A stretch of DNA of 64,000 nucleotides from Penicillus capitatus (taxonomy: Eukaryota > Plantae > Chlorophyta), in the NCBI GenBank assembly GCA_965649825.1, contig OZ287719.1, positions 107,309-171,308 of the forward strand, given 5' to 3'. A program made the translations under genes and the position numbers. The notes below the pieces were generated by a model. The model saw only the letters and a list, made by a program, of their open reading frames with translations. It searched no databases and was not told where the DNA came from. Shown piece after piece: positions 6,261 through 28,560 of this stretch; position 1 is the stretch's first letter, and the number at the start of each line of letters is the position of its first letter.

Positions 6261-6548
6261 GTTGTTCGGCGAAGAGAGTGCGGAAACGGACGGAACTGGT
6301 CGAAGCAGATAGACACGCGCTCAAATGCAACGTCCAAGTAATGATGCCGACATCGAGTCATGATTGCATGTACGTGCGGTTGTCCTTCCCCTATCCGGTT
6401 TACATCGTCAATGATCCTCGTCTCACTCATGCTCACTCGGGAAGAGTTTCTCGACACAACGCTAGCAACGTTTGTTGCCTTCTGCCGGCGATGGCAACGG
6501 AGTCCTTCGTGCTAGTCTTACGGTAATAGAGATCTATTCCTCAGCGAA

Positions 6549-9765: not shown

Positions 9766-10753
9766 ACTACAGAAGAATCCCGCGACAAATGAAACGTCCG
9801 TACAGTTCGTAACACGCTTTCGCAACTTCTGTTCTGTCCTTAAACAGCGCCCAATGGAGTGCAGTCCATCCATCGCTGTCGATCTCCTCGATGTCTGCTC
9901 CGTCGTCCAGCAGAGCCTGTTTACGAGTGGTTCTTCTCTGAGAACCTTGTCACACTGAAGAGACGCACCTCCGCTTATTTCACGTCTCCATCCATCGCCG
10001 TCAGGTGAAAAGGAGTCGTTTCCTGTTTGTCATGTGCATGGAGCTTTGCGTTGCGCTCGAGCGGCATACGTTGTCAGTCTCCGCTGGCGCGCATAACCTA
10101 GATCATGGTTGCACCTGGTGAAGTTCGTCCCTCTTTTGAACGGCGAGGTGTGAGGTAATGTTTCCGCCGTCCACGCCCGCGAACAACTGTGCCCCTTTCA
10201 GACAACGACACATACGTTTTTACGACGTCGCGTGAAGCTAACCGGTGATACCACGGCTGCCGGATGCCACACGGGAAGCGAGCAGAAGACAGAGCCACAC
10301 GTACAGCACACGGCACCTCATGTTTACGCGAACGCGAAACGTCTATGCGGCGCAGAGGCAAAGCGTTTAGCACGGACTGGAATGCGAGGCTTGAAACAAG
10401 GCACTGACAAAGACACGTGGTCGAATTTGTAGGCTGTCTGGACTGTCCTGCGAATGCACCGGACAGCATCCTTGCGTCTCCTCCACGCATTTTCGCGCAG
10501 CATGACTCGGATGACGAAACCTCGAACGTCTTTCTCCACAGCACGGGATGAGGGCTGGGGAACGTTGATTCTCTGGCGAGTCGCTCTGTGTGACGCTGCA
10601 CGGTGTTGTGAGAATTCGCTCGAAAGGGTAAAGGAATGCGCGTTCGCGGTAGGCTGTTCGTTTGTGAAACGTACAGATCGCAATTACAATCCTGTGATCC
10701 AGCGCGTCCATTTTAATGTTCCTTTTTTCTAAGATTATTCTCATCGTATTCCA

Positions 10754-11769
10754 TCAGAACATGGGCCCACCTATCTTTCGCCGAAATGGTTGAAGAAAAT
10801 CTCGATGTACGTTATAGGGGTAAGACCCGTCAGGCAGTTCGATATCCCAACGATGTTCACTACGTTTCTTTGTCAATACACAGGGAGAAACCCACTTAGA
10901 ATAGAGCTTAGAGTCTAAGCGATCAACTAATTTGGAGTTGTACCAAGATACTTCCATGCCCTCGTGAATAGGAACATCTTTGACGTTCTTTGCATATCTC
11001 TTGGCAGACTGCTCGTGTGCTCTTTTGATTCTCTCGTAAGCCAGTTTCCGATCTGTTGCTAATTGCTCATTATTGGCTAGTCTGCCACTTCTATGAATTC
11101 CTTTAAGGAGATATCTTGGACAGAAAAGAGTAGTGCAATGGACTGTTCGATTTATTTCTTGCACACATTCGTTAATGTGTTCGGTCCAGTCTCCTCTTTT
11201 CTCTTTCCAAATTCTCTTTAGACGATTGACGAAGTTCTTGTTGTACGCTTCAATTGTGCCGGCGCTTTTATGTGAATAAGGGGTGTGTGAATGATGTCAA
11301 CACCATGTCACTCACAGAAACTCTCAAACTCTTTTGAGATGAATGCTGCTCCATTGTCACACAGGATACGTTCCGGTGGGCCATTCAATGCAATCCAGTT
11401 CTTCAGCAGCTTTATGATATGAGTAGTAGAGCACGTTTTAGATGCTTGAGCCGTGCCAGACTTGGTAAATGCATCTATTCCGGTTGCGATAAAACGATAA
11501 CCATGCATTCCTCTAGGCAACGGACCGATGAAATCTAAACACAGGGTATGGTTCGGTGTCGGACTATCTGTCATCCCCAAATCTACGTTGTGTTGCAATT
11601 GTCTAAATTGCTGGCAAACATCACAAGTCTGAACGAAACTTTTGACGTCTTCGTAATCATTTTCCCACCGGGACCCATCCGATCTCAAATTCAACCACGT
11701 CTTTCTAATTCCAAAGTGGCCTTTGTGTGCTCTAGCAATCGCTTCCCTTGTTGTACCCCGAGGGTACAA
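10754..11769 (-). pseudogene. Retrotransposon integrase (HHCC, DDE, GPY/F-like C-terminus), interrupted
   Basis: AHKGHFG...CDVC zinc finger; TLCLDFIGP, ILCDNGAAF and SAGTIEAYNK catalytic motifs; KWVSPCVL..WDIELP..NVHRDFLQPF tail; TGA at 11308-11310 and a 1-bp deletion in a C run near 11280. Confidence 0.88.
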
Positions 11770-13556
11770 ACTTGGTAGCCCTGGTGTTTTTGGTTGATTT
11801 CCGAGGTCACTGGATTAGCCACTTTCCATCGACTGAGTACATCTGCAATCGCATTGTCCTTCCCTTCTACGAAACGGAAATTCAGTTTATCTAGTGAAAA
11901 ATGATGCCTCAGCCAACTATACTGTCGTTGTATCCTTAAATCCTTGAACTTGTGCAAAAATGTTGGCTCCTTCAGCCACTCTATTGTAGCCTGGTTATCC
12001 GAATATACGGTAACAGTAAATCCCTTCGTCATGTAAAAACATTGCTTTAAAGCTTCCACGATCCCCATCAATTCCCCCAAAAAACTTCCTACCTTCTCGC
12101 TTGTAGCGAACGAACCAAAAACACATGGTTGCAAAGCTGAGTTAAACAGAACGAATCCAAACTGGTTCAAAGGATTTCCACACCAATCGGTGTACAAATG
12201 AAACGGACCCACCCTCCGTAGTGTCAATCTGTATGCATTGATACACAAATCGGTCACTGTCTCCTGAAAAATCTTATTCGCTTGTTTGTAATCATTATTT
12301 TCTCTTTTAAGAAACGGCTTCAGCTCATTCATGACATATGTGTATTTGTAGCAATATGGTGCGACTTGTTGACACAGCCCCACTGCTCTTTGAACGTCAT
12401 GGCGTGATTCTACCCTTGGCAACTTCTGTAGAATGGCTTGCAGCTTGTGGTATGGGTTGATGGTGCCGTTATTCAGTTCTGTACCCAAAAAACTCACGGA
12501 GCTCCTGAACCAATCACATTTGTGTATGTTGACCGTCAGACCATATTCATCAAAACGCTGTAATAGCAGCCTAGTCTTTTCAAAGAGATCATTCACTGTT
12601 TCTCCACCCACTAGTATATCGTCAAAGTATCTTATCACGTCTAGTCCTTGCAGAATGTGAGTCATTCTATTATTAAAGAGCTCCGGACTTATGTTAACAC
12701 CCTGCGGAAGTCTACGGAAACCATATGTTATCCCCTTCCAATGCAATGCGAAAAACTTAGACAGACTATCGTCTATTGGTATTGAACCGTACCCATGGAC
12801 CACGTCAACAATATTAAAAACAGTCCAACTTGGATCGATTTTACTAATTGCGTCAGCTACCGGGGTTATTGTGCCACCTTGACTCCCTTTTAGATATGTG
12901 TTGATATCTCTGAAGTCAATAGTCGGTCTTATTTTCCCATTTGGTTTTCTCAAAAAGTTCAAAGGTGCCACGACTGCATGAATGGCTTCCTCCGTAGATA
13001 ACACTCGAATGATCTCTTCTTCAAGTAACGACTCTATCTCTTCGGTAATCTCTTTTTCGGTCAGATCGGAAAAATAGTTTTCTCGCCAGCAAGGTTTAGG
13101 CTCAAAATTCCATACTAGATCCCTTTCGCTAACTCTAATACGTAGTAAATTCTCATTCGCTGATCTGACCTTGTCACAAAAAACATTCGGGAAGATGCCT
13201 TTTAACCTCTGTACTAAACTCATCGTATCGTGCTTATCTACTGAACTCGTCACCATTTGTATTTTCTTCGTATCGTTCTTTAATGCATGCTTCACCCCGT
13301 TAACATCGATAATCCAATCTATGTTCACCTTTCCACACACTAACTTCATTTTGCTTGTGATATGCTGTGGAACATCAGTTTGGTTGAAGATTACTATGCT
13401 TATTTGCCCATTTGTGTAAATCTTGCAACGGCAGAATATTCCTTTATTTTGTGTGCAGTCAAAAATTGCTTTCCATTCTGCGTCTTCGGAAAATCTAAAA
13501 GGTAAGATAATTCTTCTACTCTTAAAAGGCCCTAAAACTATACTCCTTCCTGCCAC
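11691..13556 (-). CDS. Reverse transcriptase - RNase H
   Basis: KIRPTIDFRDIN, RRLPQG, YFDD catalytic motif; RNase H motifs LYTDW, GELMGIVEAL, VYSDNQA and GKDNAIADVLSR. Confidence 0.93.
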   Translation of the reverse strand: MAGRSIVLGPFKSRRIILPFRFSEDAEWKAIFDCTQNKGIFCRCKIYTNGQISIVIFNQTDVPQHITSKMKLVCGKVNIDWIIDVNGVKHALKNDTKKIQMVTSSVDKHDTMSLVQRLKGIFPNVFCDKVRSANENLLRIRVSERDLVWNFEPKPCWRENYFSDLTEKEITEEIESLLEEEIIRVLSTEEAIHAVVAPLNFLRKPNGKIRPTIDFRDINTYLKGSQGGTITPVADAISKIDPSWTVFNIVDVVHGYGSIPIDDSLSKFFALHWKGITYGFRRLPQGVNISPELFNNRMTHILQGLDVIRYFDDILVGGETVNDLFEKTRLLLQRFDEYGLTVNIHKCDWFRSSVSFLGTELNNGTINPYHKLQAILQKLPRVESRHDVQRAVGLCQQVAPYCYKYTYVMNELKPFLKRENNDYKQANKIFQETVTDLCINAYRLTLRRVGPFHLYTDWCGNPLNQFGFVLFNSALQPCVFGSFATSEKVGSFLGELMGIVEALKQCFYMTKGFTVTVYSDNQATIEWLKEPTFLHKFKDLRIQRQYSWLRHHFSLDKLNFRFVEGKDNAIADVLSRWKVANPVTSEINQKHQGYQVCTLGVQQGKRLLEHTKATLELERRG

Positions 13557-13812
13557 AAAGATGAGCCACCCATTTCTTTTAAAAGGAAAAAATTCCGGTT
13601 TGATCTCCTCTGTTACATGGAGGCAACCAGCACTTGAGACTTATTTTTGTTTCCTTTTCCCCTTTTTTGTCCAATTGCGACTTATGAGAATTAGCTTTTT
13701 GATTTCACCCCCCTTTTCTCTTCGATTATTTGTCGCCTGCTGAAAAACAGGCTCCTCTGTCAGTTTTTTTGGCAATGATACCTGGTGAATAAGAATCTTT
13801 CTACCGTCACTA

Positions 13813-16527
13813 TCAAAAACACAATCTTGTTCGCAATCTAAACGGAGGCCTAGCGTTTGTAAAGCTTCTAACCCCAAAATTGGCTTTGTCACCCCCTTGC
13901 ATACTAAGAACGAGAGTTTTGTTTTCCTTGTCGCCAAGAGAACAATCTAACGTGACTTCTCCTAAAGGTTTACTCGTGCTATTGTCAAATCCAGTTACTT
14001 CTTTGGTCGACGTTGTTTCTAAGACAAACTGATGGGTTCTAGCCAAGGATTCCGACAAAACATTGGTTTCTGCCCCGGTGTCCAACAAGAACGAAATCTT
14101 GTTGGGAATGCCAGCAATCTTCAAAGGAAGATTGTATCGGATCAACCTTTTTTGCTTTGTCCCCGTTTCTGTATCGGTTGTCTGTACTACGTTTGTCTGA
14201 GAAACACGGTCTTTGGCCACTCTCTTTGTGCTTCTGCGTGGACAATCCCTCGCTGAGTGCCCTCTTGTTTTGCAGTGTTCGCACAAATATCCGTTTCCAT
14301 TTGATTTGACCTGTTGTCTGCCGGGGAACGGAATTCTTGGCGCGCTTCGTCCATCAGATGTAAACTCGTGCAAGATTCTTTGGACCCGTGACCACTCTTG
14401 GGCGTTGTCACAGCCAAGCGTCCCAAGTTGGGCCTGTATTCTCGGATGGGCAATATTGAAAACGCGTTCGAACGCAACCATGTACTTCTCTGGATGTCGG
14501 ATCTTGTCCATTAAAGTCGTCAACCGAATCGAAAACTGGCTAATATCTTCCTTTCCTTTGGGCAACATTCTTTGCAGATCTTGGATCGCTGGACCGAATG
14601 TAACTTGTTGCCTTTTGACTTGGTCGATATGAACATCTGGCTGTATTTCTCCCACTTCTCCTTGTGGTTGCCTTTGCACATGTTCCTGCACTCTCCGATA
14701 CTGCCTCTCAAGTCGTCTGCGGTCATGATCTGTCATACCACCTCCCAGGTGCCTTCTCTCCGCTTCAATCCAGTCATTCATCGATGGGGCTCGTGCCTGC
14801 TGCCTTGGCGCCTGTGGATCCCTTCGAATTCTGTCGTCCAACTCTTCCACTCTTTGATTTAAAGTTTGAAGGCTTGATTCGATCGTGCCTTGCATCATTC
14901 GTTGTTGATTGATTACCCTTTCCTCCATCTCTTCTGCATTTCTCGCTACACCCTCTGTGAGATTGCGAATCTCTTCTCTGACTTCTTGCATCATACGTTC
15001 CTGCCTCGCATCTCCTATAGTCGCGATTGCTTCTTCTCTCTGATGCTGCGGTTGCTGAGGAGGTTGCTGCGGTTGCTGTCCCTCCTTTCTGCCCGTCCAT
15101 AAACCTTTTAGGCCTTCCCAATCGAATCTTAGGCAAAACCATGCGAATCTCATTGTCCACCATAGGCCTCGAACGATGCTTATCGCCATTCTTATCTTCC
15201 TCGCCAAATATGCGAAGATTGATCCAATCCAGTTTATGATCTTCCCTAGGACAATCATGACTCCGAGCAGTTGCCAAGCATTCTTCGTTATCATGACCCC
15301 TCGCAGGGCCGGCCAGCCGAATATATCCCACAAGACTCCAACGGTCCACGTCACCATGTTATCTCGAGCGCCGAGGATCCACGTGACTATTCTCTCTATC
15401 CAGGTCTCTTCTCCTCGGCTAGTTTTCCATCCGTCGTTTATGTCGTCACATGCGCATTCGTCGAGGATGGACGTGATGTTTTCCATGTGGCCTTTGATGC
15501 TGTGCAATGTCTTCTTTATTTCATCTGCCATATCATCCGACATCCTGTCGTCGCTCCCGATCGTTGTCTTCTTGTGTTTATCTCCTCCTTCCGCGGTGTG
15601 ATTCATCAATTTCATGAATTCGTGAGCCGTTCGGAGGAAGACCTTCATGTCTCGTTCCATTTTGGTTTCTTTCTTTGGCATGTTGTTGAGGGTCGCTGCG
15701 GTGAAGGCGGAGATTATCCCGGGTGATGATACTGCTGCGGTAACCCGCCCTCCAACCATCCAATTGACAATTCCGTGTATTCCCGTTGTCAGCACAGACT
15801 GCGTTAACACGTTGAAGGCGCGTTCTTGCAAACCTATCTCTGGCGTAACCTCCACTGGTTCCACTGTGAGCGGCCACTCGGCCTGAGGCAGAGCGTCTTC
15901 AACTCCTTGCATATTGAAGACATCTTCCGGAGTCGTCTCTGTCACTGCCTCTTGTTCCGGTGTTTTCATCGATGCTTGGCTTTCCTCACGCGTTGGCTCT
16001 AGGCTCTCTGTAGATTCTTCTATCGTCACTTCTGGTTCCTCGGCCTTGGCTGGGTCTTCTGCAAACTCTTCGATCGTCGCCTCCGGTTCATCTACCCGGG
16101 CCCTCTGATAATCATCTTTGGAGATCGGCACGGCCTCTTCAAATCTTCGACGTAGGGCCCTTGCGATCGAGACACGGGTTTCGTTGTCTTCGCTATCCCC
16201 GACTATCATTTCATATACTCGATGCCGCGCTGTCTCTAGAAGCTCCTTCGGTCGCCATTCCCTATCGGATGGTGTCCCACTCACTACTAAGAAAAGCAAA
16301 CTGTTTGTGGTTTTTATCGTTTTTCCGTCCCAAGTAAGTGATCCTCCCTCTGACAGAACATTGACAAGAACCTTCGCCTCACTCAGGGTCATTCCCTGTA
16401 GAGCATCGTATACGATGACGCTGTTTGGACATCCACCGATCGCATCAATGATCGTTTTTTGCGTCTGTCCTCCAAGATCCTCGTGTTCTTCACTGTGTCC
16501 CTTTATGCAGTGCATGCAGTCTTCCAT
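13813..16527 (-). CDS. Extended Gag-protease ORF: AAA+-like N-terminal segment, TM helices, coiled coil, capsid-like region, zinc knuckle, aspartic protease
   Basis: CEHCKTRGHSARDC knuckle; FLLDTGAETNVL protease active site; the protease C-terminus (PILGLEAL) continues in ORF 13641..13937 after a frameshift; hydrophobic block WIERIVTWILG...FAWFCL. Confidence 0.85.
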   Translation of the reverse strand: MEDCMHCIKGHSEEHEDLGGQTQKTIIDAIGGCPNSVIVYDALQGMTLSEAKVLVNVLSEGGSLTWDGKTIKTTNSLLFLVVSGTPSDREWRPKELLETARHRVYEMIVGDSEDNETRVSIARALRRRFEEAVPISKDDYQRARVDEPEATIEEFAEDPAKAEEPEVTIEESTESLEPTREESQASMKTPEQEAVTETTPEDVFNMQGVEDALPQAEWPLTVEPVEVTPEIGLQERAFNVLTQSVLTTGIHGIVNWMVGGRVTAAVSSPGIISAFTAATLNNMPKKETKMERDMKVFLRTAHEFMKLMNHTAEGGDKHKKTTIGSDDRMSDDMADEIKKTLHSIKGHMENITSILDECACDDINDGWKTSRGEETWIERIVTWILGARDNMVTWTVGVLWDIFGWPALRGVMITKNAWQLLGVMIVLGKIINWIGSIFAYLARKIRMAISIVRGLWWTMRFAWFCLRFDWEGLKGLWTGRKEGQQPQQPPQQPQHQREEAIATIGDARQERMMQEVREEIRNLTEGVARNAEEMEERVINQQRMMQGTIESSLQTLNQRVEELDDRIRRDPQAPRQQARAPSMNDWIEAERRHLGGGMTDHDRRRLERQYRRVQEHVQRQPQGEVGEIQPDVHIDQVKRQQVTFGPAIQDLQRMLPKGKEDISQFSIRLTTLMDKIRHPEKYMVAFERVFNIAHPRIQAQLGTLGCDNAQEWSRVQRILHEFTSDGRSAPRIPFPGRQQVKSNGNGYLCEHCKTRGHSARDCPRRSTKRVAKDRVSQTNVVQTTDTETGTKQKRLIRYNLPLKIAGIPNKISFLLDTGAETNVLSESLARTHQFVLETTSTKEVTGFDNSTSKPLGEVTLDCSLGDKENKTLVLSMQGGDKANFGVRSFTNARPPFRLRTRLCF

Positions 16528-16844
16528 GTGCGATTTTTTTCGGTGCTCATTGTTCTGAGCCGTTCCGAGATGCTGTCACACTTGTTTGTTGTGCAGTACA
16601 AGATTACTGCCACGGCCTTTCTCTCTCCTGTTTCGTGGAGCAGTTGTAGATCCAGATTTCTTTTTGTACCGAAAATGTAGTCGTCTGTCCAGTCGCCTTG
16701 TCCGTGTACGAAGTGTCGGATGGTCTCAAGTGTGGTCTTTCTGACATCTGAAAGGTCAGCAGATTGGTGACCCCAAAGTGCAGTCACCCAGAATAGGCTC
16801 AATCCGAAGAGGAGCAGGCCATGCAAACCTCGCTCCGAAACCAT
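16503..16844 (-). CDS. Upstream segment of the Gypsy polyprotein (signal-peptide-like start, first part of the AAA+-like fold), joined to the next ORF by a -1 shift at an A7 run
   Basis: The ATG spans the LTR/PBS junction; LLLFGLSLFWVTALWG hydrophobic leader; TIRHFVHGQ; G-AAA-AAA-AT at ~16534-16541 links it to ORF 13813..16527. Confidence 0.55.
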   Translation of the reverse strand: MVSERGLHGLLLFGLSLFWVTALWGHQSADLSDVRKTTLETIRHFVHGQGDWTDDYIFGTKRNLDLQLLHETGERKAVAVILYCTTNKCDSISERLRTMSTEKNRTWKTACTA

Positions 16845-16878
16845 GTTGTGAGAATTCGCTCGAAAGGGTAAAGGAATG

Positions 16879-17125
16879 TGTCGCCGGTCGGCCGAGCAGA
16901 AAACAATACACAGCGGAAGACTCTTACATTAATCGGAGCAAGGTCTTGAGTGTTCAGAATGTGTCCTTATGTATGCGCGCGGTGACGCGACGTTCCTAGG
17001 CAGGTGAATCATCGTGCTGTCAAAACCACAGAAAAGGGCCCTTTGTCCCGTAGGACAAGACAGGCAGCGTTCCTTGGCACGGATAACCCCCGCAGAACAA
17101 GACAGTGTCACATCGCTCGGCGACA
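16879..17125 (-). mobile_element. LTR related to the TR-GAG LTR family, inserted into the Gypsy 5' LTR
   Basis: TGTCG...CATCGCTCGGCGACA; shares CAGCGGAAG, GGCAGGTGAATCA and the last 19 bp with the LTR at 7964-8199; no TSD visible. Confidence 0.75.
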
Positions 17126-17127
17126 CT

Positions 17128-17403
17128 CGTCGTCGTCGGCCAGGGCGAATTCCCGATCGAACACACACGGTTGCACAAGGAAAAGCTTACAAAACGTCAT
17201 GAGCCCCAGGGCTTTTATCCGGTCCACGCGATGGACAGGTGAGTCACCCACCTCTCAGCACCATAGAACGAGGACCCCTCATGGCCCCCGTCTCCCTTGA
17301 CACGACTCCTGAGTACCCCTTTCAAGCCCGACCCCCTCCCCACCGAGGCAGTCCCATCGCTGCAGCGAGGCCATCACATCGCCAACTCCAAATCTTGGCG
17401 ACA
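17128..17403 (-). mobile_element. Second, more diverged LTR-like segment abutting the previous LTR
   Basis: Starts CGTCGTCGTCGGCC (cf. TGTCGCCGGTCGGCC), contains GACAGGTGAGTCACC (cf. GGCAGGTGAATCACC) and ends GGCGACA exactly where host-paralog homology resumes (17404). Confidence 0.45.
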
Positions 17404-17839
17404 TGTCCATCGATCCATTCTCCTCTTCGTATTCTTTGCTCGTCGACTTCGCATAGGGCAGTCCATCGTGGAAATGCCCTCCGCTGGCCACCTGTCCATC
17501 TGCGTTCGTCCGTGCCAGGACGTAAAATCAAGATCAATAGCGACCATGAAGGCGCGTGGTTGAATCATCCAGTATGTGTCTGCGCTGTCATACAATTGTC
17601 GGTCACATCAAGATAGCAAGCAATCTCGTCGAATGGTTCTGTAGACGCGCACCACGCTTTGTTTTCTAGCCTTGCATGCCGACGCAACAGACATGACGTG
17701 GGGAGTAAGTATCAAGACAGTAACGAATCTGATAGAAAGAAAAACCTCTATCGCCCAATCAGCGACCTGTCGGAGGATACTTTGGACGCGCCTTTTAGTG
17801 ACAACTAAGTCAGAATCCAGGCTTTTATCGTGCGAAAGC

Positions 17840-17911
17840 GCCCTCGTGGTGTAATGGTTGGCGCACTTGAAGTTTTCTCAAGAGGCGTGGGTTCGAATCC
17901 CGCCGAGGCGC
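17840..17911 (+). pseudogene. tRNA-like element (pseudo-tRNA or SINE head) with intact Pol III A/B boxes
   Basis: A box TGGTGTAATGG; B box GGTTCGAATCC; D stem GUGU/GCGC; anticodon stem CUUGA/UCAAG; T stem GUGGG/CCCGC. The anticodon loop AGUUUUC is non-canonical and the acceptor stem is imperfect. Confidence 0.6.
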
Positions 17912-18595
17912 CCCGTGAGTCACTCGGGTGATAATGACTGGCCGGAGGGTGAAGCGGCGACTCATCATGATCAAGAAAATCAGAAGATTGTGCAATTAAG
18001 ACGCGGGTCAAGTCCAGACCGGAGCATGCGGTTATACGTGAGGTGGACGACGAATCGTCGCAGACGCTGTGAGACATGTGAAGCGACGGATGGAAGCACG
18101 AGTCTTCTAATTGAACGATTGAACGATGAATTGACAATGGGCGTCGGGTTGCTGATATGCTAATTAAGCGCATGCAACTGTAAAAATCCAAATCGAATCG
18201 AATCGTGCGAAAGCCATGGTGAGCCGAACTAACGCGCGTAGCGGAGACGAAACAAAACGGCAACACGCAAAGAATTGATAAAATTACAGTTCGGCCGTTT
18301 CCCCGGAAGCTCTCGCCGATCACACATACGATGAACAAAAGCACAAGGCGCGTCTGAGCCTCTTATTTCTTCGGTGTACCTTGACTCGTTTGGCGCAGAA
18401 CGTCCCTCGTCTTCCGTCCTCGCGTTGCACGCAGGTCGCCTCGGAGTCTTCTCACGTCTCCTCGAGAGTCCATCCATTCCGTCCACTGCAGCCAGCTGGT
18501 TCACGCCAAAAAAAAGAAAAAAGGCAAAAAGATAGAGAAAGATGAAGGTGAGTGGATGCAGCAACCGACGCAGTCTTTTGCGCCGGCAGCTTTAG

Positions 18596-18665
18596 GGCTA
18601 GGGTGACTGCTCAGTCAAGGTGACCGAACAGTTTCGACGGCGCCACCCGTCTCATCAGACCCCTT
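18596..18665 (-). ncRNA. Hammerhead ribozyme HHR-1 (type I)
   Basis: Minus strand: AAGGGGU CUGAUGA GACGG-GUGGCG-CCGUC GAA ACUGUUCGGUCA-CCU-UGACUGAGCAGU C / ACCCU AGCC. 12-bp stem III; GUC cleavage triplet; predicted cut between 18605 and 18604. Confidence 0.88.
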
Positions 18666-18765
18666 AAGAGTATTTGCCGATTTAGCGCTATCCAGTCCCG
18701 CCACGAGGAGGCACGGCTCGACGATGCGTTGGCAAACACACCGCCGTTGGGACCACAATTTTGGG

Positions 18766-19086
18766 TAATCACGAAATGAAACGAAATGAAATGCCATTTG
18801 GTGGGGTGGTAATCACGAAATGAAATGCCATTTGGTGGGGTGGTAATCACGAAATGAAATGCCATTTGGTGGGGTGGTAATCACGAAATGAAATGCCATT
18901 TGGTGGGGTGGTAATCACGAAATGAAATGCCATTTGGTGGGGTGGTAATCACGAAATGAAATGCCATTTGGTGGGGTGGTAATCACGAAATGAAATGCCA
19001 TTTGGTGGGGTGGTAATCACGAAATGAAATGCCATTTGGTGGGGTGGTAATCACGAAATGAAATGCCATTTGGTGGGGTAATCACG
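18766..19086. repeat. Minisatellite, 34-bp unit TAATCACGAAATGAAATGCCATTTGGTGGGGTGG, 9 copies
   Basis: GCCATTTGGTGGGG recurs at 18793, 18827, 18861, 18895, 18929, 18963, 18997, 19031 and 19065; no spacers. Confidence 0.95.
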
Positions 19087-19658
19087 AGGATGTCCTTCCT
19101 TCCGGGATTCCTCAACCAGGTCGAAGGGAAGGCCGCGCCTACAAGAGACGACCCTCACCCCGCCTTCGGGACTAACGGGTGGGCCCGACGCCGTAGAAGC
19201 CGCTCAACAGTCCGCGCCACAACCGTCGCACGATTGCCGCCATCGACGGCAGCGTCTCATGCGCTGTTGTATCATTCTTTCGACGGACAACCGAACGACG
19301 ATTCGACGTAGTGGGACCGGAGCTGCGCAACTGTGGGGGAGTATCTCCCGGAAAGAAGGGCCATCCGAGGATGTCCCCCCGATCCGAGATTCCTCAACCA
19401 GGTCGAAGCAAAGGCCGTCTACAAGAGACGACCCTCACCCCGCCTTCGGGACTAACGGGTGGGCCCGACGCCGCAGAAGCCGCTCAACGGCCCCCGCCAC
19501 AACCGCCGCACGATTGCCGCCGTTCTCGGCAGCGTCTCATGCGCTGTGGTAAGGTACTTCAATAGTGCAAAACTTCAATATGACGGAACAATCGAGGACG
19601 CGTTCGACGCATCCGGACTGGAGCTGCGCAACTACGGGGGAGTATCTCCCGGAAAGAA
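19086..19658. repeat. Two diverged direct repeats of ~280-290 bp
   Basis: Both start GAGGATGTCC (19086, 19367), share CTACAAGAGACGACCCTCACCCCGCCTTCGGGACTAACGGGTGGGCCCGACGCCG and end GGGGGAGTATCTCCCGGAAAGAA. Confidence 0.9.
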
Positions 19659-19679
19659 AGACGAAAAATGGTACGCGTC

Positions 19680-19965
19680 ATCACTTATATAACCCTTCAG
19701 ATGATGTGACAGCGTCACATCATTTTGTCGCGCAATCAGCCAATCACGACGCGATTTCGGAATACTAACCGTCGGAAAAAGAAGCTGGGAGGAAGGCGTC
19801 GATTCAGCCGATAGCCAATCACGTTGCAGTATCGGAATATTCCATCTGTCACATCAGAATATTCCATCTGTCGCATCAGAATATTCCTATCGAATCAGCC
19901 ACTCAGCGCGCACCTTTCAAAGCGACGTTGACAGGGTCACATCACCATCCAAGTATTTAAGGCCT
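19680..19965. promoter_or_regulatory. Putative bidirectional Pol II promoter
   Basis: Leftward TATATAA (plus strand TTATATA at ~19685-19691); CCAAT boxes at 19740 and 19815; 22-bp repeat with GAATATTC palindrome at 19835-19887; rightward TATTTAA at 19954-19960. Confidence 0.4.
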
Positions 19966-20356
19966 ACCATGGCGCGCATTTCGTCTTTTGTCGTTAGGGC
20001 GGTTCTACTGGTGGGTTCTTGCTTCCGGGTTTCGGCTCGGAACATAGAATGCCAAATACCGGGTCAGTGCTGCCAGGCTATAAGCCGCCGACCCGGCCCG
20101 TCGGTGTTGCGAGGCATCCCTTCGGGAGGTGCTGCTGACCATCACCTTCCCGCCATGGTTGGCGCAAGCAAAGGTCGTTGGACGCTGGATTCGGAGTGTT
20201 CAAGGCGTGTTGAACAGGCGGCGCGTAGCGGGTGCCTAAGACCATCACACCTACTCCGAAATTTGCGCTCCGCCGCACGCTTAAGACATACGGCTCCACT
20301 GCGCTAATGCCGCGCCGCCTTCGGGTGACGCGTCACTGGTTCAGTGGGGAGGGTGG

Positions 20357-20465
20357 GCTTGGGGTCATCCTAGCCAATCCGGATCTTTCCGGATCGCGTC
20401 GAGGGTTTTGGTGCCACGACGCGAAGGGGTCTGACGAGACGGGTGGCGCCGTCGAAACCCTAAGT
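20357..20465 (+). ncRNA. Hammerhead ribozyme HHR-2 (type III, stem I closed by a branched loop)
   Basis: GCUUGGGGU C / AUCCU AGCC ... AAGGGGU CUGACGA GACGG-GUGGCG-CCGUC GAA ACCCUAAGU. 9-bp stem III GCUUGGGGU/ACCCUAAGU; loop I holds hairpins AUCCGGA/UCCGGAU and CGCGUCG/CGACGCG; predicted cut after 20366. Confidence 0.85.
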
Positions 20466-20639
20466 CTTCTGTTTACGTGTCGTCCGAACCGCGCGCGCTC
20501 GAATTACGCGTTCCATTCACGCTCTCCGTGTCGGAGCTTAGCCAATGTCTAGCACACGGGGTAGATCCGTCGACCGCGTCCGCGGTTTTTCTGTTCCGAC
20601 GAGTCGATGTCGCGTTCTGGTTCGCGCCGAGACGCGGGA

Positions 20640-20716
20640 AAGGGGTCTGATGAGACGGATGGCGCCGTCGAAACCGCAGAGTGCTGCTCCGTTGCATTCG
20701 GCGGTCGCCCTAGCCA
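20640..20716 (+). ncRNA. Hammerhead ribozyme HHR-3 (type I)
   Basis: AAGGGGU CUGAUGA GACGG-AUGGCG-CCGUC GAA ACCGC-A-GAGUGC-loop-GCAUUC-G-GCGGU C / GCCCU AGCC; predicted cut after 20706. Confidence 0.88.
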
Positions 20717-21756
20717 GTCGTTTTATTTTCTGTCTCTTTTTCGCCTGTATGTGTCTATGTTTCTGCCCACGTGCGTTAACACCACCTGACCTTTACAACC
20801 GATTACAAGGCAAAAAGCATATGTGTGTATGTATACATGCTCCCCACTTTCGTTCGGTTTGTTTATTCATCTGCCGTCGTGTCCACTCAGTCTTTTCAGC
20901 GAATGCTGTCCTATCGAGACGTCGTCTTCTGTCGTCGACGCCGCGCCACATTAGACAGACTTTGTCAGCAAAGCGACCGCTGCCAGATGCAACACACCTG
21001 CAGGAAAGTGTCACTGTCGCGTCATTAGGCACAGAACCCCTCTCACCGTCGTGACCAACACCGTCTTGCGTTTTGCTAGGATGCCTGCACAGTGTCCTTC
21101 GTTGTCCGTCAATGCACACAGGAGCACCGTGATGACAAGGATGAAGCGAAATGTTCTTTGGGCGTTCATGTCCATGCCGCAGAGGTTGTAAAACATCCAC
21201 AGTTCCATCATCGAAAGAGTGGTGAATGCCCAAGTAGTCTGCGAAGACCAAATCGATGTTAGTCACTTGATCGAATGCTTTTCGTCTGTGTCGAAGTTTT
21301 TCGACTATTCGTGAAGCGTGGGGCAGACATATCACAAGTTTCCTTGCTCTGTGCCCGGCACATCAATCGGCAGAATCAGGGGCCGCCGGTCTTTGTTTTG
21401 TTTCGCGATAGTTTTTCGGTCTGTCTGCTTTGTCTCGTTACCAGTCTGACTTGAGCTATGCACGAACTTTTGAGTCTTGTCAAGTGTAGCGTGTCATATT
21501 GTTTACGTCGGTATAGGGCGTGTGCAAACGTCCAGTCAGCGCGAATCGGCGCGGACAGCGTGCTTGCGGGAAAAGACTATCAATCTAGATATCGCACACA
21601 TGTGCGACGGGCGGACAACACCTGAATAGAGTGTGGAGAACCGACATATATAGTCAATCGTATGCACATAATAACCCAATCGTTGGGCGCGCGAAACAAA
21701 ACTCATGTGAAATATAGAGGATGGATGGATGCCATTCATTACATACCAACGTTTCG

Positions 21757-22195
21757 GTTCGACTTATAAAGATCGAACTCAAGTTGACAAAGAAAAGGCC
21801 AGAAAAATAAGTCCGAATAGAAATGGCCCGTTCGATTTATGAGGACCGAACTCGACTTGGCAGTGAAAACGGCCACGGCATAAAGCCCGGCAGTGAATGA
21901 GACTCATGTCGACAAAGAAAAGGCCAGTGCAATGAATCCGAATGGAAACGGCCCGTTCGATTTATCAGTATCGAACTCGACTTGCCAGTGAAACAGCCAG
22001 AGAGATGAATCTGAATGGAGCCGGTTCGATTTATAAGTATCGAACCCATCTTGCCAGATAAAACAGCCAGAGAGATGAATCTGAAAGGAGACGGCCAGTT
22101 CGACTTATGCCTGTCAAACTCGACTTGCCAGTGAAACAGCCAGATGAGGCCCGTTCGATTTATCAGTATCGAACTCGACTTGACAGTGAAACAGT
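21757..22195. repeat. Degenerate repeat array with six embedded palindromes GTTCGAY-N8-RTCGAAC
   Basis: Palindrome copies at ~21757, 21830, 21955, 22024, 22098 and 22153, usually followed by TCGACTTGCCAGTGAAACAGCCA. Confidence 0.85.
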
Positions 22196-23142
22196 CACGG
22201 CGTCAAAGATACCCGGATACCTTCCGATACCTTCTGATACCTTTATCCAATTCATGCCCGTCACGAACCCTTGCAACCATTCGACTCACGGACACAACGT
22301 CTCTTCCGTTGCCGCCGGCAAACAAAACGTTCGGAACTTTGTCTCGAATGGGCGCTTTCCAGTCTCGTCGGCATCCCAAAACAAACGGCACAAACCAGTC
22401 CCTTGGCGATCTGACCGTCCGTCCACACTTCCGTTCCCGCATTCCCTAGACCAATTCCCAGCGCCTCCGCACTAGACCTACCGCCGGATGCAAACCCCGT
22501 GGAGCGACATACCATACCGTCTAGTCTGCCACTCTCCCTTGTGGACACCAACGTCTTCCTCAAGCTGACGACGAAGCAAAGCTCCGTAGCGAAACCGACG
22601 CAAGAGATTCACGGACCACGGCTCTTGAGAAAAGAATCCACGCAGAACACCCGAAGCGTGCTTGCAGTGGAACGGCAATACAGGAAAGAAAAAACAACAA
22701 GCCTACGACACACACCGATAGCGGAAAGACGGCGCTGGCGCGGGAAAGAAAAAACCACGTTTCCTACGAAGACACACAAGAAAAGAAAAAACGCGCGTCG
22801 AGCCATGGCGATCGCAGAACTCAAGGTCAGCACGCCGCAGTCAACCGAGGAACGTGGCCCACGGCAATCCGCGTTCCCAAGCCGTCATCACCCCACGCTC
22901 TCCACTAATCGCACACCTAGGTCGTCGTGCTTTGGCCTCACCGCGTAGTCGCCATCCATATTCTCCCCTTTATCACTCATCCGAGTTACGCATCAGATCG
23001 CCAACTCATCCTCTTTTGCCGACCCTTGACATCTCTTCTCTCCTCGCCCGCCCATCTCGACAAAGCTCCGCCTTCCACGCGAGAAGCCCGATACAACCTC
23101 TAACGAATCCTAATCCGCATACCGGACCGCTGCATCGGTCAC

Positions 23143-24414
23143 CTATCTTCTGGATCTCTTTCCAGAATCCCTAGATGACCCCTCCGCCTCACCGACGCCC
23201 TTCCGCTTTGCATCGGCCGCTTTCTTTATGTCCGACATCCGCTGTTCACGAGCCCGTGTGCTCCGTAACCCGTAGCGTCGCTTTGCCTCTCTTTCCCTTG
23301 ATACCTCTTCATCGTAAGATGATTCCCAAGAACGACGTTTGGAACCGCGGCCCCTAGATACCGGCTCTTCCACTTCCATAACCGTGTCCCCGTCGTCGTC
23401 CACGTTCCCTTCTTCTCCGTCGACGACTGTCGGTATTCCTTGCACCACGTTCACAGGCGTCCCCTCGGCGCCCTCCTCGACGTCCGCCGGCGTCCCGTCG
23501 GCGGTTGACGCCATCGGTATGCCTTGCACGACGATCACGGGTGTCCCGTCGGCGATCTCCACGACGTCCGCCGGCGTCCCGTCGACGACTGTCGGTATGC
23601 CTTGCACGACGATCACGGGTGTCCCGTCGGCGATCTCCACGACGTCCGCCGGTGTCCCGTCGACGATTGACACCACCGGTATGCCTTGCACGACGATCAC
23701 GGGTGTCCCGTCGGCGATCTCCACGACGTCCGCCGGCGTCCCGTCGACGACTGTCGGTATTCCTTGCACCACGTTCACAGGCGTCCCATCGGCGATCTCC
23801 ACGACGTCCGCCGGCGTCCCGTCGACGACTGTCGGTATTCCTTGCACCACGTTCACAGGCGTCCCATCGGCGATCTCCACGACGTCCGCCGGCGCCTCGC
23901 TGGTGCCCGGCACAGCCAGGCTTATCAAGAAGCTCACGAAATTATGGGCCAAGTCCACGAAGTCCTCTGATGCACGGCGTTCGTCGGGCGCTGTGCTCAT
24001 GAGGAAATCAACTGTTGAACTCAAGTATTCCACGAAACGCAGCGTTCTTAGGAATTCGTAGTCGTCGTTGGCGTCGGCGACCAAGTAGTTCGACACCGCA
24101 GCTTGCCATAAAAGGTTAGCATAGTCCGCCCAGGTGCGAAGTTGCACATCACTAGGGCCAGGTTCGTCCGCTCCTCCTGCTACACGTCGCGGAGCCAGTT
24201 GCCGGCTGACGTGAAGGACCGCCAGAAATCTATCTGGGTCTGTCCCTTCATACGGTGATCCTATGTCCTCCTCGCCGGGCACGTATGCAGTAAACGTGTC
24301 AAAAAGAGCCGACTGAAGGGCGTTGAAGAACACGCGGTACCCCTCACGTTCGACCAGTTGGTTGTCCAACGCTTGCAGAACGCTATGAATAAGCGACGAC
24401 ACGGACGAACTCAT
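23143..24414 (-). CDS. Orphan protein (~423 aa from MSSSVSS) with six 26-aa tandem repeats and a basic, NLS-like tail
   Basis: ORF 23143..24573; repeat GTPADVVEIADGTPV(N/I)VVQGIPTVVD with a 78-bp period; C-terminus RGSKRR...KRKG...GKRSRR; no recognised domain. Confidence 0.6.
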   Translation of the reverse strand: MSSSVSSLIHSVLQALDNQLVEREGYRVFFNALQSALFDTFTAYVPGEEDIGSPYEGTDPDRFLAVLHVSRQLAPRRVAGGADEPGPSDVQLRTWADYANLLWQAAVSNYLVADANDDYEFLRTLRFVEYLSSTVDFLMSTAPDERRASEDFVDLAHNFVSFLISLAVPGTSEAPADVVEIADGTPVNVVQGIPTVVDGTPADVVEIADGTPVNVVQGIPTVVDGTPADVVEIADGTPVIVVQGIPVVSIVDGTPADVVEIADGTPVIVVQGIPTVVDGTPADVVEIADGTPVIVVQGIPMASTADGTPADVEEGAEGTPVNVVQGIPTVVDGEEGNVDDDGDTVMEVEEPVSRGRGSKRRSWESSYDEEVSREREAKRRYGLRSTRAREQRMSDIKKAADAKRKGVGEAEGSSRDSGKRSRR

Positions 24415-24566
24415 CGTTGTTTTTTTTGCAGAAAAATCCGAGAACCAAACGCCAATAGCGCTGAGGGCAGTTTCGGCAAAAAGACGCGAAACGGCAAACG
24501 GCAAATACGCGGAATAATTGTACGGCGGTACGCTTTTATACTCGCGAAATGCAATTACGTAAAATC

Positions 24567-24740
24567 TTCTCATCTACGGTTATGTCACGGAACTCGCATC
24601 GCGACGGCTGACGGCGGCGAACCTTCTCAGCTACGGTTTTGTCCGTCCCGGAACTTTCTCATCTACGGTTATGTCACGGAACTCGCATCGCGACGGCTGA
24701 CGGCGGCGAACCTTCTCAGCTACGGTTACGTCCCGGAACT
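24567..24740. repeat. Two 89-bp direct repeats upstream of the orphan ORF, followed by a CCAAT motif and an (ATCA)n tract
   Basis: TTCTCATCTACGGTTATGTCACGGAACTCGCATCGCGACGGCTGACGGCGGCGAACCTTCTCAGCTACGGTT at 24567 and 24656; ATTGGCTGATTCGAC at ~24757; ATCAATCAATC at ~24830-24851. Confidence 0.85.
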
Positions 24741-25515
24741 CGAACTCGCATCGCTATTGGCTGATTCGACGGCAGAACGATGTGACGTCCATTAATCAAC
24801 GGCGTCGCCATTATGGATGATGATCGATCGATCAATCAATCAATCAATCAATAGCAAGCCAATTAATGGAATTAGTAGTCAGTCGATCTGCCAGTCTGGC
24901 GTCGCGTAGACTGTTTGGAGGATTTTACATCGAAGAATCGTATAAGAATGAAACTTTTCAAAGGCAAAGCCTTACACAAACGAAAGTCAAGAACTGTAAT
25001 TCTGCAATGCTTTTATTCTGTTGAGTGATGTCACATCGAGGCGGATGGGTGCATGCGTTTCTAACGATACAGACGAAGGGTCAGCGATGAGGGAACGTGT
25101 GACCGAACGACGACGCATCACGGTCGCCGTTACAGAGAAAACAAAAGAGAATGCAAAAACAGCAAGGAAAAGAGGACGAGACAAATCAACTAGCTATTCG
25201 ATACGGTCCTCGGGAAGAAGTAATGGCGACAGTGGGAACACCTTCACGTGTATGCCTTCCTAAAGCGACATCACACACCAATGCATCTCCTTAGGGAGTC
25301 GCATCCGAAGCGCCAGTCGCTAAGAACTCCGTGCGTAAAATCAAGATCGTTCAGATCATCGGTCCCGCGCTCGAGAAGCGACAACTTGATGCTTTTGATC
25401 TCCAAGGCAGCGACGCGGCGAAGATGAACGGTCCTTCCGGATGCAGGAGGATATGTATGACGACTCTATGCGGATGCCGCAGATCGGGATCACCGTCCGA
25501 CAGCAAGCAAAGCTG

Positions 25516-26850
25516 TTACATCGACAGCAAAGACGAACATCGAACGGTCTGACACAGAGAGAAAGACAGGTAGCTAGCTTCGTGTGATAGACAAAAAAGC
25601 AAAACAGTTTCAAGAGAGAAACACTGGTACGACATGACGGTAAAAAAACAGGTAAGTGGTGGGCGATCTGTCTCTGAACCTCCAGATCTGGTCCATTCCG
25701 AAAGATGACGTGTGTTTGGTGAATCGGAACCGGTCTTTGCACTGGGCTCCATGTCCTCTTCATCGAGACGCGTTCTCTTCTTTTTCGCGCCGGCGTCGAC
25801 GAGAATCTAAACGCAAGAGCCGTATGTGATCGAGTACAGACAGCGAGCGCATGATGTCACCTCGGCAAGGATCGGGTTGCCATGACTGGCTGCAGCGGAG
25901 ATCGGCGTGCGCGATTCCTCGTCCTTTGAATCAACGTCGGCCCCGGCATCGACGAGCTCCTACGATGGACACGCCCGTCTCGATCGTTTTATGCGTGTGC
26001 TCTCTCGCCAGTGTGATTTCGGCGTGTCCATAGAGTGCCGCTTGATGAAGCGCGGTCCTCTTTGCCAGAGTTATCGCCTCGACGTCGGCATCGACCGTCA
26101 GGAAATACTGCAACCGCTCGTCACCGCAGGCGCGTTGTCACTTGATGCAATGACGCACTTGGACCATACGCAGATTCCCCTTCGACACGGCATCGTAGAG
26201 CGGCGTCCTTCCGACAGTATCACCGCCGTTGGTATTCGCTCCGCCTTTGTACAAAACCTGCAACGATGTGCTTGCGCCGCCATTCTTTGCTTTGAGACGA
26301 GGAGGCACCTATGCGGTTTCGACGTCCCCATCGAGCGCCGCCTCATGAAGCGACGTCTGATCGCGCCGGTCGGCCCTCAAAGACACATAGATGCCAAACC
26401 ACATCGCTTTACCGCTGAAGACGGACGTACATCTCGATTTCTTCAAGCCACGGTTTCAGGATCTTGGCGAACGTCGCAGGAGAAACGATGGTCCTGTCTG
26501 TGCGAGACTCCTGTCACAGTCTGTGTGAGGAAGTTCACGATTCGTCGCATCGTCGACGGAGAACGTGGTCGAAAGCGGCGCGATCGCATCATCCCCCAAC
26601 TCGCATTTTGTTGCATACTTCAAGCATCTGTGTTTCTTCGGCTAAAAGCCGTAGAATCTCATCTTCCCCCTTTACTCAGGTAGTGACAACTGAATAAGGA
26701 TTAATGCGTTCCATCGAGATATTATGTAAACAGTCTCGACAATTCCTCTCAATGGAACATGTTGGCCAAAAAACAGATGACAACGCAAAAGACAACGAAG
26801 GACAAAAAACTCTCAAGTGACAAAGGCGAACGGTGCCGGACATCCACAGA
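25516..26850 (-). pseudogene. Chimeric ankyrin paralog (G3-like 5' part fused to G2-like ANK exons)
   Basis: 25790-26371 matches 3890-4480; 26368-26720 matches 6712-7060; the junction lies at a shared GGTC. Confidence 0.55.
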
Positions 26851-26999: not shown

Positions 27000-28560
27000 T
27001 TAAGGTCTGCTAAGAAGATATGCAATGCCACATAGAAGAACGAGCAAGAAAACAACAAAGCCAAGGGAACAAACAATCAGCACAACTCGACGACTGTCAT
27101 GACGTCTGTTTTCAGCGCCGGGATTTAACAAGGACCGAAGCGTAGCCATCTGATAATCGGAACAATGCGCATCCGAGAAGAAGCACAAGAAGTCGAGTGG
27201 AATATTTCCGCCGTCGTTCCTCGCTTTCTTCGAGGCGCCGTAATCGAGGAGTACCTGTCAATGCACCTTCCTTCCCTTAACTGTGGACGGATCGAATGCC
27301 TCACCTGAACAACCTCGACGCATCCTGTCGCTGCTGCAAGATGTAGTGGAGTATTTCCATAAATGGTTTTCGCTTTAGTATTGGCACCTGCTTCGAGCAA
27401 AGCCTGCACGACAGCTGCGACAACGGACACGCCTTTTGCACGTTGGCGCGCACTTTCGCTGTTTCTGCTCTCGCGCTGGCGTCTTTTATTCCTCCTTCAG
27501 GCATCGTTGCTGCACAATGAAGTGCAGTCACACCGTTAGAATCTCTCGCTTCGATGTCCGCGCCTTGTTCGAGAAGACGCTGCGCAGAAGACCATCACTA
27601 AGAAACATCCTCGCGCAGCCAGACACACCTTCACACGGTGCGCATCTCCTTGCAGTGCTGCCAAGTGAAGCGGCATCGTTGCATAGACTGCAGTCTCATG
27701 GTAGTGGACACGGCGCTCGAAGAACAACTACATCGTCAGTTTCCGTGGGTGTACTGAACCTAGGGTTACGCGGCGCCTGTCACCTGTGCATTCTCATCGT
27801 TTATCTCGAAGGCTGCGATGCTCGAGGGAATGTCTCCCGTATTCCCTTCCGCGGACAACTGGGCACCTTTAGGCAACAACAAGCTCGAGCGCGAGGTGGG
27901 ATGATTTAACCGGCGTTACCACGAGTGCTGGATGTCGCGCGGAGGAGAAGAAGGAAGCAGAGCCACGTCGTGTACAGAACGACGCGTTTCATTTTTTCTC
28001 GAGCTCAAGCGCCAGAGACCGCGACGAAGAGAATCCGTTCTCTGGCTGAAATGCGAAGCTTAAGTCAAAAAGCAACATCTCGGCTGCATAATTTTGAATT
28101 TACAGGCCTTCCGAGTTGCCATACGAATGTACGGACGCCATGCGCGCCTCTCCTCCACGTCTATTTGCGGAGCATGTCGCTGAAAACAACGTCGGGCGTG
28201 TTTTTCCTGCACGGCTGGAGTGCGGGAGAGTGACCAGACGACCTTCTGTGCTGCATGAAGCCCCACAGAGTCGCCCGTACTACTTTCGCAGTCTGGCGAC
28301 GTTTCGCGTTCCGACGGCGACATGGGCATCATTCGCCCAAGAGCGAAATATCTCCACTATTTTGGATACATCGTGTTCAGTTGCAGCTAAAGAAGACCTT
28401 CCGTCGTTGTGGAAGCGAGAAGAACTTCGGCAATTAGACGGGGACAACATCGAATGGTCCATCCAAATGGACAGCTTGGACGGCGAATCTGAGGCGATTA
28501 CAACACGGCCTGACGTGTTACACACTTCTTCCGCTCACTGTTTGTTCCTGGTTAGCGCTT
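27000..28560 (-). CDS. Ankyrin-repeat gene G4 (older paralog of G1) with a C-terminal TM helix; 5' end unresolved
   Basis: IVEIFRSWANDAHVAVGTRNV resembles G1 NVKIFGVLENDAHVAGGNRNT; ANK exons VQALLEAGANTKAKTIYGNTPLHLAAATGCVEVVQ and MPLHLAALQGDAHRVK; last exon ends VVLIVCSLGFVVFLLVLLCGIAYLL. Confidence 0.55.

Follow-up and report, generated by a model that had tools for sequence, protein, structure and literature searches.

Retrozymes, the hammerhead ribozyme-bearing retroelements of circular RNA, have been documented thoroughly in flowering plants and in animals, and algae are mentioned only in passing (PMC5680766, PMC4918200). Among the top-ranked literature matches for 'hammerhead' combined with Bryopsidales or Ulvophyceae names, no paper was found. 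Here, we analyzed a 64,000-nt stretch of the green alga Penicillus capitatus (GenBank assembly GCA_965649825.1, contig OZ287719.1, positions 107,309 to 171,308 of the forward strand; hereafter the window), which contains three hammerhead motifs, designated HH1, HH2, and HH3. Comparison with related copies suggests that they are selected self-cleaving ribozymes within a repeated non-coding element of two related green algae, a reading to which we give a probability of roughly 70%. The mechanistic details of this reading (promoter use, release, and circularization) are held with less confidence. An earlier inspection of the same DNA, made without database searches (the sequence-only reading), had proposed three hammerheads in a non-coding mobile unit.

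The 28-nt core CTGAYGAGACGGRTGGCGCCGTCGAAAC occurs three times in the window, at 18631-18658 on the minus strand and at 20431-20458 and 20647-20674 on the plus strand, with 0 occurrences expected by chance. Both strands of the 64 kb were scanned with a hammerhead descriptor, which requires CUGANGA, stem II, GAAA, A15.1-U16.1, H17, and a minimum of 4 bp in each of stems I and III, and which admits type I or type III topology. HH1, HH2, and HH3 were the only matches (0.01 expected per randomized window). HH1 (18596-18670, minus strand) is a type I hammerhead with stems I, II, and III of 5, 5, and 12 bp, a 6-nt loop on stem II, and a stem III that forms a closed hairpin. HH2 (20355-20467, plus strand) is of type III, with stems of 5, 5, and 11 bp; its stem III is open, and a segment of about 50 nt, folded into two hairpins, closes its stem I. 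Only the proximal 5-7 bp of this stem III are common to the other copies of the element. HH3 (20640-20716, plus strand) is of type I, with stems I and II of 5 bp each and a stem III of 5+6 bp interrupted by a mismatch. The H17 positions are 18605, 20366, and 20706, and cleavage is predicted after C18605 in HH1, C20366 in HH2, and C20706 in HH3, leaving 5'-OH RNA ends at 18604 (minus strand), 20367 (plus strand), and 20707 (plus strand). The core consensus (C3 U4 G5 A6 N7 G8 A9 ... G12 A13 A14, A15.1-U16.1, and H17 not G) is present in all three. When the sequences were trimmed to the ribozyme boundaries, the predicted minimum free energy (MFE) structure was the hammerhead for HH1 and HH2, and the hammerhead lay at most 0.9 kcal/mol off the MFE for HH3; the predicted MFE fold changes when extra flanking sequence is included.

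Judged by their sequences, HH1, HH2, and HH3 are genuine, functional-looking hammerhead motifs of one family. The core matches and the descriptor scan bear out the positions given by the sequence-only reading, and its 5'-OH ends agree with the H17 positions. Its stem III lengths of 12 bp for HH1 and 5+6 bp for HH3 were recovered, but the 9 bp given for HH2 became 11 bp. Its observation that homology ends at the core holds within the window, and its expectation that the predicted helices are the dominant fold is in line with the MFE models for HH1 and HH2 and the near-MFE model for HH3. It did not mention the split between type I (HH1 and HH3) and type III (HH2).

The hammerhead core is open in five of the six reading frames, so spurious open reading frames (ORFs) that translate the core could be used as a search target. 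A profile of the window's frame-1 core peptide, KGSDETGGAVET, was compared with every representative protein. It matched 15 ORFs, which by their sequences translate copies of the HH2 and HH3 types; both types are present in two of these ORFs. The family loci were L034, L036, and L037 from the window's species (ERZ25074695) and, from a relative (ERZ26696514) about 86% identical to the window in syntenic sequence, L035 and the pair L032/L033, which are two haplotypes of one locus. Copies of the HH1 type, orthologous or paralogous, are present in L032, L034, L036, and L037. A non-redundant BLAST census counted 25 ribozymes at no fewer than six loci (>=6) in the two species, 23 of them intact in the core and 2 damaged there (U4C and A6C), the copies being 12-25% diverged. 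Given that the family was sampled via ORFs of one reading frame, the copy number is a lower bound. No longer ribozyme arrays were seen in the sampled loci. An orthologous interval was not found in the related species, where synteny ends at window position 32449; within the syntenic part, this species has a NACHT-HEAT gene.

The ORF spanning HH3 was found verbatim on a 206-kb ENA contig (L031), whose locus is 98.4-99% identical to the window and represents a second haplotype or strain. HH1, HH2, and HH3 are intact in L031, and the sole difference inside the ribozymes is A/T at 20416, where the window has A and thereby loses a pair of the HH2 loop-1 hairpin; this pair is retained by every other copy. 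The pattern AGGGGTCTGAYGAGN{10,22}CGAAAC was also run against the metagenome, viral, and prokaryote genome collections of JGI; no member of the family was retrieved, and the matches were unrelated sequences and a small number of unrelated hammerheads. The latter include type III hammerheads on three short, soil-type JGI metagenome contigs (L005, L009, and L019), with GUA followed by ACCC... and a stem II of GGAAC/GUUCC. These are direct repeats 645-658 nt apart, a retrozyme-like tandem arrangement.

The module of HH2 and HH3 was aligned from eight copies (16 ribozymes). The pairwise mismatch fraction was 0.067 in the core, 0.10 in the helices, and 0.21 in the loops, and it reached 0.35, with many indels, in the linker between the two ribozymes. 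The nine invariant core nucleotides were unchanged in 16/16 ribozymes. Variation within the core was confined to N7 (U/C) and H17 (C/U/A, never G), both of which are free in the hammerhead consensus, indicating probable selection for cleavage. Pairing was assessed in MAFFT alignments, which are independent of structure. Standard pairs filled 96.2% of cells in the type I alignment (13 sequences), compared with 29-53% when the partners were slid, and 91.1% in the type III alignment (10 sequences), compared with 36-54%. In stem III, the HH1 and HH3 subfamilies differ by two compensatory pairs (C-G/U-A and G-C/C-G), which amount to about one event; in addition, G-C/G-U switches were numerous, and the HH2 hairpin showed one compensatory pair. 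The family comparison thus favors the selection on the ribozymes that had been proposed from the window, with apparent constraint on the catalytic core and the helices. The accompanying description of stem III as 'fully covarying' was overstated, since the stems III of HH1 and HH3 partly align and differ by these two compensatory pairs and several G-C/G-U switches.

The ribozymes lie in an interval, 17504-20869, that contains no credible ORF and is a composite of about 290 nt of unexplained sequence, the element itself, and a nested short interspersed nuclear element (SINE). The largest extent of the element, 17793-20848, is the span collinear with L036 when the nested SINE is set aside; L036 is collinear with the window across 18203-20848, and the other loci over about 18517-20724 at 80-88% identity. 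Three conserved blocks can be distinguished. Block A, the left arm (18517-18754, minus strand), comprises HH1 with about 90 nt upstream and about 90 nt past the cleavage site, and is 85-93% identical in the other copies. Block B, in the center (19649-19994), is about 95% conserved among same-species copies and contains TTATATAA (about 19688), CCAAT boxes at 19738 and 19813, and GTATTTAAGG (about 19951); from these motifs we infer that it is a promoter, possibly a bidirectional one. Block C, the right arm (20333-20724), holds HH2 and HH3. Between blocks A and B lie an array of 34-nt repeats (18747-19087), which differs in length between L031 and the window, and a unit of about 282 nt that is present twice (19081-19660). 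The array and this duplication are missing from the short-form copies (L034 and the second copy in L037) and are therefore optional, so that the short form measures about 1.4 kb and the long form 2.2-2.7 kb. A pyrimidine/T-rich tract (20717-20750, plus strand) follows the HH3 cleavage strand, and a mirror-image pyrimidine tract (18507-18547, minus strand) follows HH1; 8 of 300 shuffles were as good. Both ends of the element accordingly read outward in the same order, from a type I ribozyme to its cleavage site and a pyrimidine-rich tract, after which homology fades.

The layout, with HH1 facing left and HH2 and HH3 facing right, recurs in L036, L034, L037 (twice), and L032. In addition, L032 holds an inverted, head-to-head HH2-HH3 pair. 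The opposite-strand arrangement of the ribozymes is, from this comparison of copies, a conserved feature of the unit, and the proposal of a non-coding unit agrees with its repetition at several loci in two species.

The cores of HH2 and HH3 are 216 nt apart and their cleavage sites 340 nt apart. The RNA predicted from these cleavage sites (20367-20706, plus strand) would be 340 nt long, with both ribozyme bodies inside, and the other copies predict an RNA of 353-371 nt. The similarity between HH2 and HH3 spans only about 70 nt, and there is no direct repeat of long terminal repeat (LTR) size around them, as the sequence-only reading had maintained. Upstream of HH3, the cleavage strand and hairpin of HH2 recur in decayed form (GUCGGAGCUUAGCCAAU...), suggesting an old tandem dimer; HH2 and HH3 look like the remains of such a dimer, with a monomer of about 220 nt. 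Given that the middle cleavage strand has decayed, the outer two would be the ones in use, one in type III and the other in type I mode.

With the retrozyme life cycle taken as a model (PMC4918200, PMC7229834), the following course can be proposed. Transcription would start outward from block B in both directions. On the right arm, cleavage by HH2 and then by HH3, 340-370 nt further on, would free an RNA with 5'-OH and cyclic-phosphate ends, a possible substrate for circularization by a ligase as in retrozymes. If the 340-nt RNA is circularized, its junction should recreate a complete type I site for HH3, as reasoned by hand from the sequence. HH1 would trim the opposite-strand transcripts on the left arm, and the element may have spread via an RNA intermediate.

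Several results weigh against selected ribozymes in a retrozyme-like element. First, a 340-nt circle cannot account for the copying of the whole 1.4-2.7 kb unit, including the promoter block and the HH1 arm. The predicted 340-nt RNA also folds no better than shuffled controls (z = -0.71), and its GC content of 0.61 argues against a simple retrozyme model. Second, neither sharp ends nor target-site duplications were found in the compared copies. The copies, termini, target-site duplications, and linked reverse transcriptase (RT) of a Penelope-like element (PLE) that the sequence-only reading had proposed to look for were thus recovered only in part, since the sampled loci yielded the copies and none of the other three. 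Third, covariation is thin. The two compensatory pairs represent one subfamily split, much of the pairing signal is conservation, and covariation in the type III alignment was not above the shuffle control. Recent copying or gene conversion could also mimic part of the conservation. Given this limited covariation, the case for function rests mainly on the class-specific conservation pattern.

Finally, the Rfam hammerhead models (RF00163, RF00008, RF02275-7, and RF03152) gave no match across the region, either at the gathering score or at E<=10. Only when the search was confined to 96 nt did RAGATH-1-hammerhead align HH1, with identical helices, at 21.2 bits compared with a gathering score of 56.3, and HH2 and HH3 had no Rfam match. 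The Rfam check suggested from the window alone thus gave no match above threshold, and the helices of HH1 were nevertheless reproduced. These scores below threshold indicate that HH1-HH3 are structurally atypical for the curated models, and the long stem III and large loop 1 are the likely cause. We treated the silence of Rfam as a limit of the models and not as evidence against the motifs. Genome surveys relying solely on Rfam undercount hammerheads, as curated covariance models miss genuine ones with long helices.

Self-comparison of the window showed that the ribozyme interval lies within a segmental duplication. Positions 1-7085 are a non-coding duplicate of 7295-26738 at about 90% identity, and the second copy carries extra blocks, namely a small LTR element, a Ty3/gypsy element, and the interval 17504-20869. 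The block 1-669 is 99.3% identical to 7295-7963, compared with about 90% for the remaining blocks, suggesting that this end was duplicated later or underwent gene conversion. The interval had been described as absent from the paralogous locus; the paralog in fact offers no clean empty site, as it has its own unrelated 443-nt filler at the corresponding position. The 7-nt direct repeat CATCTGC borders the interval at 17497-17503 and 20869-20875, and the paralogous positions are 2354-2360 and 2797-2803. Since CATCTGC/CATCTAT surrounds the unrelated filler in the paralog, CATCTGC is not readable as a target-site duplication. We rejected the interval as an intron of a duplicated gene, because the paralogous blocks lack codon periodicity and contain non-triplet indels and stops in all frames.

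The nested SINE is tRNA-derived (17841-18201, plus strand), with a tRNA-like head at 17840-17910 and an (AATCG)3 tail. It is flanked by a 13-bp target-site duplication, ATCGTGCGAAAGC, at 17828-17840 and 18202-18214. L036 represents its clean empty site, and no other copy of the SINE was found in the sampled loci. The head scored 36.9 bits with the Rfam tRNA model and received no ARAGORN call; its acceptor stem is imperfect. In L031, the head carries a 4-nt indel. The tRNA-like sequence was rejected as a part of the ribozyme unit, given that it belongs to a separate insertion with an empty site in L036.

The Ty3/gypsy-type element (10605-17404, minus strand) has the order gag-PR-RT-RH-IN, with the RT at 11691-13556 and a degraded integrase end, and a related solo-LTR-like piece lies at 16879-17125 within its 5' region. 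With this RT about 5 kb from the ribozymes and the small LTR element at 7964-9765, the earlier statement that no RT is encoded nearby is incorrect. The small LTR element (minus strand) is 1.8 kb long, with 236-nt LTRs that are 99.6% identical, and it encodes a gag-like protein only. The two elements have the primer binding site (PBS) TGGTTTCGGAGC in common. It was not found in the ribozyme unit at up to 3 mismatches, and hence no functional link of the unit to the neighboring LTR elements was found. The 236-nt LTR (7964-8199 and 9530-9765) begins with ...GGAGGCGCCGAACGAAAC and has CTTGACGAGGCAGGTGAATCACCCTAGCC inside; the two are reminiscent of a hammerhead's 3' half and its cleavage strand. 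Kinship of this LTR to HH1 depends on a marginal local alignment (3/300 shuffles) and was not relied on. L031 carries a 5.6-kb Ty3/gypsy insertion (13713-19351) whose PR, RT, RNase H, and integrase are intact by Pfam. It is missing at about 24255 in the window, suggesting recently active LTR retrotransposition. Elsewhere, the window encodes a three-RRM protein, the best named relatives of which are from Bryopsis (51%) and Ostreobium (45%); by this one protein, the DNA is eukaryotic and probably of a Bryopsidales-like green alga. Repeat-rich ORFs occur at 26.5-30.4 kb and 42-59 kb, several of them duplicated within the window; they include repeats with a period of about 150 nt at 27369-29961 and Chlam_PMP/beta-helix repeat proteins at 42117-43502 and 58213-59349.

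We considered several other explanations of the unit. It may belong to an undescribed class, a DNA unit with a conserved central promoter that fires in both directions, in which a hammerhead facing outward trims each transcript. Defined RNAs would thus arise from both strands, as in an integrated both-polarity replicon or a transposon with hammerhead-defined ends, and one core family would serve in type I and type III topology within a single unit. We regard this as unlikely.

The copies could also be DNA forms of a circular RNA replicon of about 1.4-2.9 kb that replicates by a symmetric rolling circle, with HH2 and HH3 cutting the plus multimers and HH1 the minus multimers. In line with this, the opposite-strand ribozymes are conserved across the unit in two species, and successive same-strand cleavage sites in the tandems of L037 and L032 lie 1.6-2.9 kb apart and would delimit unit-length RNAs; for plant retrozymes, both RNA polarities have been reported (PMC4918200). 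However, the best-conserved segment outside the ribozymes resembles a DNA promoter (TATA and CCAAT), which points to DNA-templated transcription. The copies have diverged by 12-25%, are stably integrated, occur in both haplotypes, and carry a nested SINE; the unit encodes neither a polymerase nor any other ORF, and the 340-nt RNA lacks a compact fold. A replicon of this kind is therefore rather improbable. The sequence-only reading had also likened the two polarities to viroid-like RNAs. Ribozymes do occur on both strands, but the likeness is weak, as they are 1.7 kb apart, the right-arm RNA is no more structured than its shuffled controls (z = -0.71), and a promoter-like block lies at the center.

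That reading had further pointed to PLEs. A non-autonomous PLE derivative, in which partial tandems and an inverted, 5'-truncated copy place ribozymes on both strands, would match the tandem-plus-inverted geometry of PLE insertions, which have hammerheads near their ends (PMC8557442), and the head-to-head HH2-HH3 pair in L032 fits such a geometry. Animal retrozymes have also been argued to derive from PLEs (bioRxiv 10.64898/2026.07.22.740005). However, no PLE-type RT or GIY-YIG ORF was found among the scanned ORFs of the window or the called genes of the fetched loci, and the Penelope-like link drawn from the window alone is not sustained. The green-algal Chlamys PLEs are mostly without hammerheads, stem III is long here, unlike that of the minimal PLE hammerhead, and the HH1 arm is a distinct conserved sequence and not an inverted copy of the right arm. 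We consider this derivation doubtful, with a small chance of being correct.

An LTR-type retrozyme as in flowering plants, mobilized by the neighboring Ty3/gypsy elements, is very improbable. Ty3/gypsy elements adjoin the unit and are polymorphic between haplotypes, HH2 is of type III like the ribozymes of plant retrozymes, and the 236-nt LTR has its marginal likeness to the HH1 cleavage strand (3/300 shuffles); yet the ribozymes are not inside 300-400 bp direct repeats, the PBS common to the local LTR elements is missing from the unit, and neither a polypurine tract (PPT) with an LTR-end box nor a 4-bp target-site duplication was found. Equally hard to credit are decaying relics of no present function, conserved because the copies are young or gene-converted: limited covariation, core-killing substitutions in two copies, and the broken HH2 loop-1 pair of the window's own allele would fit, but the linker contains many indels and has reached a mismatch of 35%, whereas 16 ribozymes keep the nine invariant core nucleotides unchanged, the core changed only at its two consensus-free positions with H17 never G, and the pattern holds across two species about 86% identical elsewhere.

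Selected ribozymes within a repeated non-coding element thus remain the favored explanation, and they would extend ribozyme-bearing repeats to siphonous-type green algae. The architecture, with a type III and type I pair of one core family, a third ribozyme on the opposite strand, and a conserved promoter-like center, is unreported for retrozymes. If the 340-370 nt RNA circularizes, the right half of the element would be a natural, compact promoter-ribozyme-ribozyme cassette for circular RNA production. If both strands are processed, the element would bear on the relationship between viroid-like RNAs and retrozymes.

Compared with the known systems, the algal unit has features of several. Like Avsunviroidae and other viroid-like circular RNAs, it has hammerheads for both strands; unlike them, it is DNA-encoded, integrated, and multi-copy, with ribozymes 1-2.8 kb apart, a conserved TATA/CCAAT block, and no compact rod or branched fold. 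With the pseudo-LTR hammerheads of PLEs (PMC8557442), it shares ribozymes near the element ends and tandem and inverted arrangements on both strands. It differs from them in that no RT/GIY-YIG ORF was found, in a helix III of 5-12 bp instead of the minimal, dimer-dependent hammerheads of PLEs, and in a left arm that does not repeat the right arm in inverted form. The plant LTR retrozymes (PMC4918200) resemble it in their green-lineage host, type III hammerhead (HH2 here), high GC content, dimeric ribozymes that delimit a non-coding RNA, and co-resident Ty3/gypsy elements. The algal unit, in contrast, has no 300-400 bp LTRs around the ribozymes, tRNA PBS, or PPT, and no 4-bp target-site duplication was found; its second ribozyme is of type I, and its predicted RNA is 340 nt long versus 600-1000 nt.

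The metazoan non-LTR retrozymes (PMC7229834) are likewise non-coding genomic repeats without LTR, PBS, or PPT, and their type I hammerheads are canonical and not minimal. The same-strand cleavage sites of the algal unit, 340-370 nt apart, fall inside their monomer range of 170-400 nt (PMC7229834), and the predicted RNA ends would suit circularization by tRNA ligase. However, the host is a green alga and not an animal, and the algal element is a fixed heterodimer of type III and type I and not an array of identical monomers; of the metazoan-type 150-450 bp tandem monomer, only vestigial homology is present, in mixed topology. The unit as a whole measures 1.4-2.7 kb, holds a promoter-like block that is conserved, and carries its third ribozyme on the other strand; its predicted RNA has a GC content of 0.61, not below 0.5, and is not highly self-paired. 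By this comparison, the element would work most like a retrozyme and yet is differently built, and it may best be placed as a variant within the retrozyme-like elements.

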